In this document: one piece after another, positions 35,779 through 41,481 of the stretch
Position numbering within the stretch: position 1 is the first letter of the stretch
Layout of the letters: every line of letters begins with the position of its first letter
NCBI GenBank assembly: GCA_030704615.1
Contig: CM060731.1
Span: 23,436,001-23,500,000, forward strand
Source of the DNA: Takakia lepidozioides
Lineage: Eukaryota > Plantae > Bryophyta
Length of the DNA: 64,000 nucleotides
Direction: 5' to 3'
Translations under genes and position numbers: made by a program
The notes under the pieces: generated by a model
What the model saw: only the letters and a program-made list of their open reading frames with translations
Told to the model about the DNA's origin: nothing
Database searches by the model: none

Positions 35779-38700
35779 ATGGCAGAGCATGCAGCGATGG
35801 AGGGGATGCGGCAGTGTGTGGGCGAGCTGGACAAGTACATCTACTTACGCAAGTTGCAGCAAGAGAGTCCGGGTCTGTTCTACACGGTGCTCATCAACAA
35901 TGCGCAGGAGGTGCTACCCGTGGTGTACACTCCCACGGTGGGACAGGCTTGCGAGCACTACAGCAGCCTGCCGATCCAGATGCATGGCCTGGTGCTGACC
36001 CCTGCTGACAAGGGCGGGATTCTTGCCAAGCTGAAGGCGTGGGCGCATGGCGACAGCGTGCGCGTAATTGTGGTCACTGACGGCGAGCGCATTCTGGGCT
36101 TGGGCGATCTGGGCTTCAATGGCATGGGCATCAGCGAAGGCAAGATCCTGCTCTACACTGTCATTGCAGGTGTGAGCCCCGGTATGTGCATGCCCGTTTG
36201 TCTGGACGTGGGCACCAACAACCGTGATCTGCTCCAGGATGCCTCCTACAGGGGTCTCAAGAAGCCCCGGTTGAGGGGACCTGCATATGACGAGCTGGTA
36301 GACGAGTTCATGAAAGCAGTCCGCGAGTGGCAGCCACATACTCTTCTGCAGTTCGAGGATTTTGGTAACACCAATGCCTTCCGCCTCCTTGAGAGGTATG
36401 CACCCCTGCAATGCTGCTTCAATGACGACATACAGGGCACCGCTTGTATCACTCTGGCGGGTCTCCTCTCCGCGCTGCGTGTTACCGGCCAATCTCTGGC
36501 GGACCAGACCATCCTGTTTTTGGGAGCAGGCGAGGCTGGCACTGGAATTGGGCAACTCGTTGCCAAGGCCATGATGCACTTCACTGACAAGCTGACACTT
36601 CAGGAGGCCCTGAAAAAATGCTATTATTTGGACTCCAAGGGACTTGTTTGCAAATCCCGCGCTGATCTGCAGCACCACAAGCTGCCATTTGCTCACGATG
36701 TCCCCTTCCGATCTGACCTTCTAACTGCAGGTTATCAAACTCTACCTTACGTTGCTTGTTTTGTTGTGCACAGCGTAGGAGTTATGGAAGCTTCAAAAGA
36801 TTTGCTGGTGCTAATCAAATGCTACTCTTTGTGCGAGAGTGGGCACGGCTGACATGACTGGGGTGGAACACTGGGTGTTCAGTGAAGGAGCTCAAGCCAA
36901 CCATGCTGGTGGGTGTGTCCACAATTCCTGGAGCTTTCAGCAAGGAGGTAGTGGAAGCAATGGCTGAACTGAATGCGAGGCCCATTATTTTCCCTTTATC
37001 AAATCCGACATCCAAGTCGGAGTGCACGTACGAGGATGCATTTGCGTGGAGCAAAGGCAAGGTTGTGTTTGCCAGTGGCAGCCCCTTTCCTGCTTACAAG
37101 GCTTCTGATGGAAAGACGTATTATCCTGCACAGGCGAATAATGCTTACATATCCCTACACTTTCCTACCTTGTGCTTTCTGGTATCTTTTGGCATTCCAG
37201 TACTAAGCTTTCCCAGGGATCAGTCAAGGGGATTCACAGCTGGAGAGAGTTCATAGAGATTACAGAACTCATCTTCTAGCTATCGGTGCTAGCTTACAAA
37301 TGTTGATCCTCACTTAGTGTTTCAGTTCTCATAGCAAGCACTTGCTTCGCTGTCTATACGAGCAATCCTTGACTGCAGGTACATTTTTGGTCCAATCGGC
37401 ATGGCAGCACTGGTTACTAAGAGCCATAGGATTACAGATGAAGTGTTTTTGGAAGCAGCCAAGGTTCTGGCTTCACTCACCCCTCAGGATACACTCGATA
37501 CCGGAATGCTTTTCCCTGCCTTCTCTGACATGAAGGTATTTATTCCTTTTCTTCCCACAAAGTGGCTTTCCTCTCCATTAAGAGGTGTGTCAGAATTTTG
37601 ACACAGTAGGGGCGGCAATGTTCCAGACTTTAGTGGTGCCACTCATTGCAAAAGTTGCGGAATTTATGGAATCGGAAGGCCTTGGAATCAAGCCACCAGG
37701 AGTGGTGAACTGGGAGGAGCTGGTGAGAAGTCAGATGTATAAGCCCAGGGTAGAGGGGCAAGAATTGACGGTGAAGGTGGCATCCACCCCCGTTCCTGAA
37801 GTGCACTGGGAGTCCATGAAAGAGCTGGTAATGCTTCGACAAATGTACACTGACATCCAGCGTTACCTGTTCCTTCGCTTTCTTCAGGTATTATCTCTGG
37901 AAATGTTGGTTCTATTACATTGTTCTGAGCTCATTCCCGCACTTTGTCTTATCAAAAGACCATGAGGGAGCTGCTGCCTGCAGCACTGCACACTTGTAAG
38001 CAGTTGTTTCAGGTTGCAGGAGTGCACTTTTTATCTCAGGGCAAGCATAAACTGTCTGGTGGGTGGGAACAGGATAACCAGTCAGAGACATTCTGGAGAC
38101 TGATTTATCACAATGCCCAAGAAATCTTACCTTATGTGTATACGCCCACGGTTGGGGAGGCATGTGAAAAATACAGTAGACTGCCAATCACAACACGAGG
38201 TCTTTATATTAAGCAAGAGGATGCAGGTCATGTGTTGACAAAGCTGAAGGCATGGCGCCATCAGGACATCCAAGTCATTGTAGTCACTGATGGCGAGCGT
38301 ATTCTTGGTCTTGGAGGTCACTTCTACACCCTCGTCTCCCACTTCTTCACATGCCACAGTTAATCTCCTTCATAGAAATACACGTGTAACATACACATTG
38401 GCTGAAGATGGATAATAATGGTAGATCCTGGTACATGAGCAGTTTCTTTTAGTCAGGATCACAACTCTAATTGAGAAGCTGAACTGGCAGTGAAGATTTG
38501 AGCATGACATATGGTTTGTGGGTTCATCGCAGAACTGCTACAACAAGTTACGTTAGTTGATATCACACTACCCTGCAGTAGGGATGCTCTCTATAACCCA
38601 GAGCAGCAGTTCAGCTCCCACGGGATTTGCAGTTTGGATAATGGTGAAGTCCATCCAGTTTGACAAATATGTTGCTGCGGATGGCAGCCATGTGTCCTAG

Positions 38701-41481
38701 ACTGCATTGGTTTGTAACTTGCTGTTGAGATAAGGGTGTAGACACATGCCTGCTCCGGTATTGGGTGAGCCTTGGCTGATTGAGAGGAACTCAGCTCAGC
38801 TGGAGAATATGAAGTAGACTGTTCAGGAGCTTGCTTGATGTGAATGTGCAGATCTCGGGGCTGGTGGCATGGGCATCAGCGAGGGGAAGATTATATTATA
38901 CTCGGTCATCGCTGGCGTGGACCCCACCAAATGCTTGCCTGTCTGCATTGATGTTGGCACAGAAAATACCCGCCTGCTTGGTGACCCAGAGTACAAAGGT
39001 GTGCGTCAAAAGAGGATTCGTGGTGAGAAATACGATGCGCTCATTGACGAGTTCATGGGCGCTCTCCGAACTTGGCGTCCCCATGTTCTTTTGCAGGTAA
39101 TCCATGATTGTGTGCAGTATTACTACTCCCAGTAAGGCAACCCACTCTCCTTTACTAGGTTGGCCCCCATGGCTTATGTTGTAGAGTAAGGTAGGAAGTT
39201 TTGATGTTGCATGGACAAAGCTGAGTAGGATGTTAGGATGTCCAGAGAAGCTGTTAGGGGTATCTTCATCCTCAATGGCTTCCTGACTGAAAGATGTGTC
39301 TGTAGTTTGAAGATTTCGGCAACCAAAATGCTTTCAGGCAACCCACTCTCCTTTACTAGGTTGGCCCCCATGGCTTATGTTGTAAAGGTAGGAAGTTTTG
39401 ATGTTGCATGGACAAAGCTGAGTAGGATATTAGGATGTCCAGAGAAGCATTCAGAGTTAGGGGTATCTTCATCCTCAATGGCTACCTGACTGAAAGATGT
39501 GTCTGTAGTTTGAAGATTTCGGCAACCAAAATGCTTTCAGGCTTCTTGACAAGTATCAAGATCGGCAATGTTGCTTCAACGATGACATCCAGGGGACTGC
39601 ATGCATCACCCTTGCTGGTCTGCTTTCTGCTCTCAGGGTCACAGGTAAGTGTCAACCTTGGCCCAATCTTGTCTTTGTGGTAACAGCCAGAAGGAATATT
39701 GCATCAACAGCTTAATATTGCAAGTGGTAAACTGCACTTGGGAGGGGTTCAAACCCCCGGCCTGTATACCCCATTACTCAGTCTTTTGGATTTTAACACA
39801 GGAGCTCTAATGTAATGTTGGGCTTGTTTCATGAAGGCTGGTGGTTGCAAAGCCTGATTTAAGTTTTAGGGCCAAGCTTTCACAATCAGTGTGGTTGATC
39901 TTTAACACCTACAATGGCAATTCAAGGGACGATGACATATTATGGTAGGCCAGTGTAATAATAATGTGGCTTTGAGTCATGTTTCAGGGGGGAAGTTGGA
40001 AGACCAGAGAATTATATTTCTGGGAGCTGGAGAGGCAGGCACTGGCATTGGGCAGCTCATTGCCCTGGCTCTTGTTCAGAGATGTGGCCTACTAATGGAA
40101 GAAGCCCTTAAAAAGTGCTACTACATGGACTCCAAAGGCTTGGTTTGTAAGTCACGCACCGGCTTGCAGCATCACAAACTTCCCTTTGCACATGATGTTC
40201 CCTTCCAGCCTGATCTGCTGTCAGCGGTAAAAGCACTCAAGTACGTTCAAACCTGTACTAACTTGATGAAGGTTACAGCTAGCATCTGATTTTTGTTCCT
40301 CTTCAAAGTTCAGTAGTTGCGTTATCTATCACTATCTAACATAGGTGTCCCTTGCCAGGCGGTCATAGTTTTGGTGAAGCATCAGCCCTTTTCTTGTGAA
40401 TGAGACACCTAAGGCTACTGTACTGGCAGGGGTTACTCAAGTCTACGTTTTCTTCTATCAGATTCCTCTGGACAGGATCTTGATTGCCGGTTTTCTACTT
40501 TGACTGTGCTCTTTGACATTGGAGGGTCGCAGGGACTAACACAGTACATGTTGGGGGGCATGCCAGGCCCACCATGTTGATAGGTGTTTCGACAATGACA
40601 GGGGCATTCACCAAGGAGGTGTTGGAAATGATGAGCAATATCAATGAGCACCCCATTATCTTCCCATTGTCGAATCCAACATCCAAATCAGAGTGCACAT
40701 TCGAAGAGGCATATGAGCACACGTCAGGGACAGTTGTGTTTGCAAGCGGCAGTCCCTTTGCACCTTTCACCACTCATGACGGCCACACTCTCTTTCCAGC
40801 GCAAGCAAATAATGCTTACATATCCTCCTCACTGTCCCAGTATTTACTCTGGTTAATGCAATCTTTGCATCATGAGTTTGTAGATGTGTTGTCTCATTAA
40901 AGGGGGTGCAACAGATGGTTCAGATATTTTACTGCCTTTCTACATACTTCTGCCATTCCTTGACTAGGAAACACATATTTGGCCCAATTGGGATGGCAGC
41001 AGTTCTAACAAATTGTAAAACCATCACCAGTGAGGTGTTTTTGGAGACTGCAGAGTCATTGGCTGAACACGTTGCTGAGGCACGACTTGCCTCAGGCATG
41101 CTCTTTCCAGCCTTCTCCGACATGAAGGTACAGGACAACATTCTAGTATTTTGTCAAACGTGAGCTCACTGGTGTGTGTAATGAATTGTGCCGGGGACTC
41201 GTCAATTTGGTTTTTAGTAGATTCACCTTGTCAGGGGTAGTTCAAGACAGGTTGGACGTGTTTTTGGAGAGGTTTTGGTTATCACCAACCAGACACTTCT
41301 TGTGAGGTCTGCATAGACACAGCTGACAAGCTGCAATTGGGAAATATATGTGCAGGAGGTGGCGCCACAACTCATCGCAGATATTGCACAGTACATGGTG
41401 AAGGAGGGGCTGGGCAAGGAGCCCGGCCCTGTGAAAAACTGGGTGCAATATGTGAAGCAACAGATGTTCAAGCCGGAGTGA
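35779..41481 (+). CDS. Tandem (two-module) NADP-dependent malic enzyme, about 1013 aa, 11 exons
   Basis: Exons 35779-36730, 36883-37148, 37383-37535, 37627-37887, 38073-38316, 38852-39096, 39509-39644, 39988-40240, 40567-40819, 40975-41127, 41356-41481 total 3042 nt in one frame. Motifs [50 protein letters not shown] and QANNAY each occur in both modules. Exon 4 runs from the end of module 1 (SQMYKP) into module 2 with no stop. Confidence 0.9.
37149..37382 (+). other. U12-type AT-AC intron (ME module 1)
   Basis: Donor ATATCCCT, branch point TCCTTGAC, acceptor AC; splicing restores QANNAY|IFGPIG. Confidence 0.9.
39135..39538 (+). repeat. Tandem duplication of about 201 bp spanning an intron 3' end and exon start
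   Basis: Units 39135-39335 and 39336-39538 both contain TGTAG|TTTGAAGATTTCGGCAACCAAAATGCTTTC. Confidence 0.92.
40820..40974 (+). other. U12-type AT-AC intron (ME module 2)
   Basis: Donor ATATCCTC, branch point TTCCTTGAC, acceptor AC; same protein position as in module 1. Confidence 0.9.

Follow-up and report, generated by a model that had tools for sequence, protein, structure and literature searches.

The 64-kb window (the whole stretch of Takakia DNA analysed) contains a gene that encodes two malic enzymes (MEs) in one polypeptide (Table 1). Plant MEs are generally assigned to two lineages, in both of which single subunits assemble into oligomers. From its sequence, and with a probability of about 0.6, the product of this gene appears to be a cytosolic NADP-ME that forms a covalent pseudo-heterodimer of about 110 kDa with two predicted-active modules. 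Comparison with other species shows that it is no isolated case but belongs to a conserved streptophyte family.

Table 1. Features of the two-module ME gene; positions are those of the window.
Feature	Positions	Strand	Evidence
Two-module ME gene, 11 exons, 1013 aa	35779..41481	+	gene model, RNA contigs, Pfam
Exon 1, module 1 aa 1-317: domain A, catalytic Tyr/Arg/Lys, FEDF, NDD, GAGEAG, DSKG...HHK	35779..36730	+	
Exon 2, module 1 NAD(P)-binding domain: SNPT, NNAY	36883..37148	+	model, RNA contigs, Pfam
Intron 2, U12-type AT-AC: ATATCC 5' end, TCCTTGAC branch site at 37366, AC 3' end	37149..37382	+	
Exon 3, module 1: IFGPIG ... SDMK	37383..37535	+	model, RNA contigs, Pfam
Exon 4, fusion junction: module 1 end (to 37746), linker, module 2 start (from 37807)	37627..37887	+	
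Linker, aa 498-517, 20 residues	37747..37806	+	homologue comparison, homologue models
Exon 5, module 2: YTPT, DGERI	38073..38316	+	model, RNA contigs, Pfam
Exon 6, module 2: GISEGK	38852..39096	+	model, RNA contigs, Pfam
Tandem duplication of about 205 bp, intron 6 and exon 7 start	39135..39542	+	sequence, RNA contigs
Exon 7, module 2 metal ligands: FEDF, NDD	39509..39644	+	model, RNA contigs
Exon 8, module 2: GAGEAG, DSKG...HHK (S346/K347/K362-equivalent)	39988..40240	+	
Exon 9, module 2: SNPT, NNAY	40567..40819	+	model, RNA contigs, Pfam
Intron 9, U12-type AT-AC, same codon as intron 2; branch site at 40957	40820..40974	+	
Exon 10, module 2: IFGPIG ... SDMK	40975..41127	+	model, RNA contigs, Pfam
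Exon 11, module 2 C-terminus and stop	41356..41481	+	model, RNA contigs

Gene structure and transcription

The coding sequence of 3042 nt is spread over 11 exons and specifies 1013 amino acids and a stop. The phases are consistent, and in-frame stops are absent from all 11 exons. When the spliced gene model was compared with databases exon by exon, the Pfam domains malic (PF00390) and Malic_M (PF03949) were each found twice, in order and above the curated cut-offs. Exon by exon, the two modules are 51-87% identical. Exon 4 is one open frame that runs from the C-terminal MYKP of module 1 through the linker into the first helix of module 2, as originally described. The linker does lie inside this exon, but its extent had to be corrected to residues 498-517, with module 2 starting at W518.

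All 10 introns were seen as splice joints in contigs from two probable RNA runs, X1 and X2. Record 9 of X2 (2187 nt) passes from the end of exon 2 through exons 3 and 4 into module 2 and reaches at least exon 9 among the pieces listed. Record 4 of X1 joins exons 4 to 8. These are assembled contigs rather than long reads, and none of them covers the entire coding sequence. Their joints across the junction in both runs agree with the single transcript that had been proposed, and the 11-exon frame, the doubled Pfam domains, and the splice joints together bear out the claim of two MEs in one polypeptide. Two adjacent genes or an assembly artefact were rejected, as the junction lies within one exon, is crossed by RNA joints, and is conserved in other genomes.

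The two U12-type AT-AC introns, 2 and 9, occupy the identical codon position in their respective modules. Each has an ATATCC 5' site, a TCCTTRAC branch site, an AC 3' end, and RNA joints. There are only two matches to TCCTT[AG]AC in the window, and these are in introns 2 and 9, near the 3' ends. The duplication across intron 6 and the beginning of exon 7 introduces a decoy 3' splice site (39305) with a stop behind it. Inactivation of the gene by this duplication was rejected, since the RNA contigs of both runs use the distal site. Between the two copies of the 205-bp repeat there are 3 substitutions and 2 indels, and each RNA run shows 2-3 coding SNPs against the window. Based on these differences, the strains used for the RNA runs probably carry the duplication, though it lies outside contig coverage.

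Motifs, cofactor, and localization

The catalytic Tyr, Arg, and Lys, as well as FEDF, NDD, GAGEAG, DSKG, GISEGK, and IFGPIG, were all found in modules 1 and 2, as first reported. Both modules possess the Class I ME residues, which are the metal ligands E-D and D, GXGXXG, and the Asn of SNPT and NNAY. Residues of the S346/K347/K362 type are the NADP-specific ME signature (PMC3183043). They are present in both modules, where DSKG...HHK aligns with DSKG...QEK of human ME1 (PMC3183043), in agreement with the NADP type that was predicted. The canonical N-terminal NKG.AF...LLPP segment (aA1/aA2) is indeed absent from both modules, and the alignment of module 1 with maize NADP-ME starts at about maize residue 141. 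There is no transit peptide, as expected, because an in-frame stop lies 12 codons upstream of the ATG. Purifying selection was found on module 1, module 2, and the linker region in comparison with Riccia (pN 0.17, 0.15, and 0.21; pS 0.74-0.83). One dead module was rejected on the basis of the intact motifs and low pN.

The protein is predicted to be a cytosolic, NADP-preferring Class I ME that converts malate and NADP+ to pyruvate, CO2, and NADPH. Two catalytically intact modules would be made as one chain of about 110 kDa. Judging by the rest of the family, it would likely supply cytosolic NADPH and contribute to malate/pH balance.

Comparison with known malic enzymes

Chlamydomonas MME2 and MME3 (Cre14.g629750 and Cre14.g629700; gene names from PMC11548211) possess the GIS/AEGK motif and QANNAY and are without the canonical N-terminus, as here. 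Enzymes of this type are about 55-62% identical to exon 1 and form the sister group of the tandem clade. Chlorophyte MME2/3-type enzymes have one module per chain, whereas Takakia has two diverged modules and a conserved linker; by sequence, the two-module protein is a variant of this green-algal class. The class is probably the same as a long-branch algal ME cluster noted previously (PMC5958461).

Canonical plant NADP-ME (maize 5OU5 and sorghum 6C7N) and animal ME1 share the fold of each module (TM by target 0.82-0.88, best rmsd about 2 A) and have the same catalytic, metal, and NADP residues. They are single subunits of 60-66 kDa that form homo-dimers or tetramers, and they show 43-48% identity. 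Canonical NADP-ME has GIPVGK, IFPG.G, and an N-terminal aA1/beta tetramer interface, whereas Takakia has GISEGK and IFGPIG and this segment is absent. Plant mitochondrial NAD-ME alpha/beta also consists of two paralogous cooperating ME units, about 65% identical, but these are encoded by separate genes, are mitochondrial and NAD-specific, belong to another clade, and are not covalently joined (PMC7573226). Their duplication occurred near the origin of seed plants (PMC7573226). Bacterial MaeB, an ME-phosphotransacetylase fusion, likewise has an ME in a multidomain chain, but its ME belongs to Class II and is joined to a domain of another kind, a regulatory one (PMC7902834). The bacterial hybrid ME is a weak match to the two-module family (E about 1e-13).

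Origin and distribution of the family

Full-length homologues of 981-1037 aa were identified in Marchantia, Calypogeia, Riccia, Netrium, and Chara, and a partial two-module homologue in the hornwort Nothoceros. In the genetic model Marchantia, the two-module ME is MARPO_0051s0068. Database searches gave no matches for a two-module ME in other mosses or in vascular plants. No tandem ME was found in the PDB, only ordinary single-module clusters were found in the ESM Atlas, and a metagenome scan with the linker alignment gave nothing informative. A published description was not found in searches of literature that mostly excludes subscription journals. In several annotations the gene is divided, with the break at the AT-AC intron instead of at the boundary between the modules, and the resulting models are incomplete enzymes. 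The family has probably been overlooked in part because of this splitting.

Module 1 was placed in the tree by exon 1 alone and module 2 by per-exon identities. The module-1 and module-2 clades each span Chara, zygnematophytes, and bryophytes (support 89/88 and 94/90), and the streptophyte modules group together at 97/97. PVGK-type rows form a separate clade (support 100) in a quick tree whose rows did not include canonical land-plant NADP-MEs. In the AU test, a land-plant-only duplication was rejected (p=2e-5) and a Chara-only duplication was marginally rejected (p=0.045). Takakia and Chara have in common both AT-AC introns, a further intron per module that follows the MK/IK codon, and two introns found in module 2 only. 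The module clades, the AU test, and these introns uphold the earlier view that the fusion is old; a recent species-specific duplication was rejected by the AU test and by introns common to other species. The module trees and the common introns, among which each module has one of the U12 AT-AC type, indicate a single genomic duplication-fusion before the Chara/land-plant split. The ancestor was a green-algal-type ME with GISEGK and a short N-terminus.

Among the MEs retrieved, the canonical N-terminal motif is present in 0 of 129 EGK-type single-module or partial proteins (<700 aa) and in 108 of 114 PVGK-type MEs. The original prediction of a distinct ME class was supported. However, GISEGK and the N-terminal loss predate the fusion, because single-module EGK-type MEs have both. 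Their origin as products of the fusion was rejected, as they are class-wide in single-module green-algal (Chlamydomonas MME2/3-type) MEs.

Arrangement of the two modules

Structure predictions were run on two database homologues, P0266 and P0125, in place of the window protein. In both AlphaFold runs, which had shallow alignments of 19 and 13 rows, both modules were folded but were not docked (pTM 0.54 and 0.52). The linker had a pLDDT below 50. There are eight fixed differences between module 1 and module 2, six of them in residues 2-69 and none in active-site motifs. Module positions 6 and 69 correspond by alignment to maize F140 (helix aA3) and Q203 (199-204 loop). Both elements are located at the dimer interface, and the C-terminal loop M627-R636, which is MYxP here, is near it (PMC13100509). 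The differences at positions 2-13 of module 2 may reflect linker packing, since these positions adjoin the linker.

The two modules probably pack in cis in the manner of the A-B protomers in a canonical ME dimer. A short linker would lead from the C-terminal loop of module 1 to the first helix of module 2, and divergence between the halves would be concentrated at the interface, with the active sites unaffected. Since the N-terminal helix and beta-strands of the canonical tetramer interface are missing, the chain would act as a covalent pseudo-heterodimer. It is plausible that the fusion replaces oligomerisation, as was suggested. The other suggestion, two kinetically different sites, finds no support in the active-site motifs, which are identical; the fixed differences are at interface positions.

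It is also possible, though unlikely, that each active module pairs in trans with another chain in a swapped dimer or higher oligomer, with the linker a mere tether. Neither model shows confident cis docking, the linker is predicted to be disordered, and algal linkers vary in length and sequence, that of Netrium being about 30 residues longer. However, the bryophyte linker is conserved (14/20 identical with Marchantia and 13/20 with hornwort), and the linker of a Marchantia paralogue is 9 residues shorter. With just 11 residues, the end of module 1 and the start of module 2 must be close. Module-specific interface residues also suggest contact between modules 1 and 2, possibly itself in trans.

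A catalytic and regulatory pair, in which one module is mainly allosteric or kinetically different, like NAD-ME alpha/beta in one chain, appears rather improbable. The identical catalytic, metal, and cofactor motifs of the two Takakia modules argue against it, as do the fixed differences, all of which fall outside the active-site motifs. In its favor, the two modules have each been conserved in their own right since before land plants arose, the ME tandem of Chlorokybus has a degenerate first module, and paralogue B of Riccia and Marchantia has small motif changes (YAPT, DGERV). Even less probable, to the point of being very doubtful, is that mostly separate proteins are made through internal promoters, termination in a retained U12 intron, or linker proteolysis, with the fusion as incidental read-through. 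Contig depth, a poor measure, is lower on module 1 than on the junction and module 2, intron 2 is retained at least partly in X2 contigs, and two genes appear in several annotations. Yet these annotations break at the AT-AC intron and yield incomplete enzymes, the junction lies in an open, conserved frame within one exon in every species examined, and Netrium has a full-length transcript-derived protein (JGI 3884-nt contig).

Implications

The oligomeric state of plant ME is under active debate in the study of C4 evolution (PMC13100509). In a single chain, both active sites and both halves of the interface could be mutated independently of one another, so communication between subunits in MEs would become directly testable. 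More tentatively, and with some doubt, the family may be a third plant lineage, a covalent NADP-ME with two active sites from the Chara/zygnematophyte/land-plant ancestor that was retained by all three groups of bryophytes but lost from vascular plants and the majority of mosses, with an asymmetric interface that couples the sites allosterically. This last arrangement, if true, would be a new way to build and regulate an ME. The family would add a third ME lineage, one that entered land plants as a natural dimer in a single chain, and its apparent loss in vascular plants would be a metabolic difference between bryophytes and tracheophytes.

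Gene Structure and Transcription

As the original prediction held, two malic enzymes (MEs) are joined in one polypeptide. The 1013-aa open frame matches Pfam malic and Malic_M twice each, in order, and exon 4 runs in a single frame from the end of module 1 through a 20-residue linker (aa 498-517) into the first helix of module 2. All ten predicted splice joints were seen in contigs of two public runs, which are probably RNA. A 2187-nt contig of one run passes from the end of exon 2 through exons 3 and 4 and continues into module 2; one contig of the other run links exons 4 to 8. 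Since these are assembled contigs, they document each joint and splicing on either side of the junction, not the full-length share of the mRNA. The predicted lack of a transit peptide holds for the unspliced leader, because an in-frame stop lies 12 codons 5' of the ATG. The window gene was analysed exon by exon; full-length comparisons and structure models were made via database homologues.

Features of the two-module ME gene and of the surrounding window
Feature	Position	Strand	Remarks
Two-module ME gene	35779-41481	+	11 exons; 3042 coding nt, 1013 aa; phases consistent, no internal stop
TATA-like box	35599		Leader
Start-stop uORF	35636-35641		ATG TAG; leader
Intron 2	37149-37382		U12-type AT-AC; module 1
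Exon 4	37627-37887		Fusion junction
Tandem duplication, ~205 bp	39135-39542		Intron 6; duplicates 3' splice site and first 33 nt of exon 7
Intron 9	40820-40974		U12-type AT-AC; module 2
GNAT acetyltransferase match	42615-43292	-	Uninterrupted 225-aa ORF; PF00583, E 2e-6; convergent with ME gene
Large PPR gene	6783-10358	+	
Reverse-transcriptase fragment	12049-14299	-	
Copia-type element	48520-51243	+	

Splicing to the first copy of the intron-6 duplication would put a stop in module 2; the second copy is used in both RNA runs. The two U12-type introns fall at the same codon (NNAY/IFGP) in either module. Each contains one TCCTTRAC branch motif, and no other copy of that motif occurs anywhere in the window. 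A probable hornwort contig (L003:3578-3994) has lost this intron in module 1, and Calypogeia (L006:6472-6876) has reciprocally lost it in module 2. The window, Riccia, Marchantia, and Chara retain it in both modules.

Modules and Linker

All catalytic, metal, and dinucleotide-binding motifs are intact in both modules, as is an NADP signature of the S346/K347/K362 type (residue types after PMC3183043), which agrees with what had been proposed. Purifying selection is similar on the two. Models of the homologues from Marchantia and Calypogeia give each module the Class I ME fold (mean pLDDT 82-83); the Marchantia model reaches a Foldseek TM by target of at most 0.88. The modules are undocked in both models (pTM 0.54 and 0.52), with a low-confidence linker. 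In maize ME, helix aA1 and the N-terminal strands build the tetramer interface, aA3 and loops form the dimer interface, and a C-terminal loop lies near these dimer-interface elements (PMC13100509). Compared with maize, this ME class is without aA1 and the N-terminal strands and retains aA3 and the dimer-interface loops. The maize C-terminal loop is equivalent to MYKP of the window; given its location, a short linker could connect the end of one protomer to aA3 of the next. Between the window and Marchantia, the linker sequence shows 70% identity; in one Marchantia paralogue it has just 11 residues. Eight positions are fixed differently between the modules, none of them in an active-site motif; six fall within residues 2-69, among them those equivalent to maize F140 and Q203.

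Judged from sequence, the protein is probably (about 0.6) a cytosolic NADP-ME with two active sites, built as a covalent pseudo-heterodimer. The linker would run from the end of module 1 to aA3 of module 2, pairing the modules as dimer-like protomers. This is favoured because the motifs are intact, the dimer-interface elements are kept, the linker is short and conserved, and the modules differ in the interface region. Pairing of the modules in trans, with which the undocked models are compatible, is rather unlikely beside such a linker. A regulatory role for one module is improbable with active-site motifs complete in both, and separate protein products are very improbable with the junction inside one exon.

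Origin

One clade (support 89/88) unites the module-1 sequences from Chara, Netrium, hornwort, the window, and liverworts, another (94/90) the module-2 sequences, and both are nested in a single streptophyte clade (97/97), in trees that took in no canonical land-plant NADP-MEs. Window exon 1 is sister to all liverwort module-1 rows, with the hornwort outside (100/97), a position compatible with either an early moss or an early liverwort. An AU test rejected a land-plant-only duplication (p=2e-5) and, marginally, a separate Chara duplication (p=0.045). Both Chara modules contain the AT-AC intron and the one that follows it, and two introns (FLQ/D and LGLG/D) are confined to module 2, as in bryophytes. 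Together, the clades, test, and introns indicate that a single DNA-level duplication-fusion predates the Chara/land-plant divergence, so the fusion is old, as predicted.

Chlorokybus has a tandem ME with a degenerate module 1 (protein P0179), which may or may not have the same origin as that of Chara and land plants. Closterium has module 1 and a mere fragment of a second module (locus L010), and in a streptophyte transcript (L009, P0135) a long N-terminal extension precedes the single encoded module. All three forms may be degeneration or fission events. Cryptophyte tandem MEs (L011:488-3336; proteins P0132, P0273, P0275) are of another, canonical PVGK type with near-identical modules. Those of L011 are 99.6% identical over 1214 nt, and thus come from chimeric assembly or from very recent duplication.

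Distribution

Exon 1 best matched proteins of liverworts and probable hornworts; green-algal ones came next. With longer database proteins as queries, full-length two-module MEs were found in Marchantia polymorpha (MARPO_0051s0068, 1019 aa), Calypogeia fissa (several, 1015-1026 aa), Riccia fluitans, Netrium digitus (1037 aa), and Chara braunii (CBR_g3078, 1025 aa); Nothoceros yielded a partial member. Public annotations already hold full-length members, labelled plain "malic enzyme." Riccia sorocarpa and Marchantia paleacea have the same exon chain and an open junction exon, yet are annotated as two or three genes. The breaks in R. sorocarpa are at AT-AC introns, and protein lengths suggest the same for M. 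polymorpha ruderalis. Chara CBR_g3084 (L005) groups with module 2 and CBR_g3085 (P0200) with module 1; consecutively numbered on one contig, they are probably a second tandem ME gene divided by annotation. No moss or vascular-plant protein was among the best 120 of 8000 candidates per search (searches covering 174-1776 aa). With that scope, loss from vascular plants and other mosses is likely but not proven.

Parent Class

The atypical features that had been predicted are present in the window. They are not specific to the fusion and, on sequence grounds, come from the parent EGK-type class (GIS/AEGK motif), to which Chlamydomonas MME2 and MME3 (gene names after PMC11548211) belong. The canonical N-terminal motif occurs in none of 129 fetched EGK-type proteins (single-module or partial) and in 108 of 114 fetched PVGK-type (GIPVGK) ones. 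The class is probably the long-branch algal cluster mentioned and set aside by Tronconi et al. (PMC5958461); searching its text by word turned up neither a tandem or fused ME nor Marchantia. No description of the two-module architecture was found in the open-access literature. The new element is the fixed two-module chain, and the parent-class features are inherited. The two-module ME is real, transcribed, and ancient, and belongs to a known enzyme family. Its chemistry is probably ordinary; the interest lies in its architecture, age, and patchy survival.
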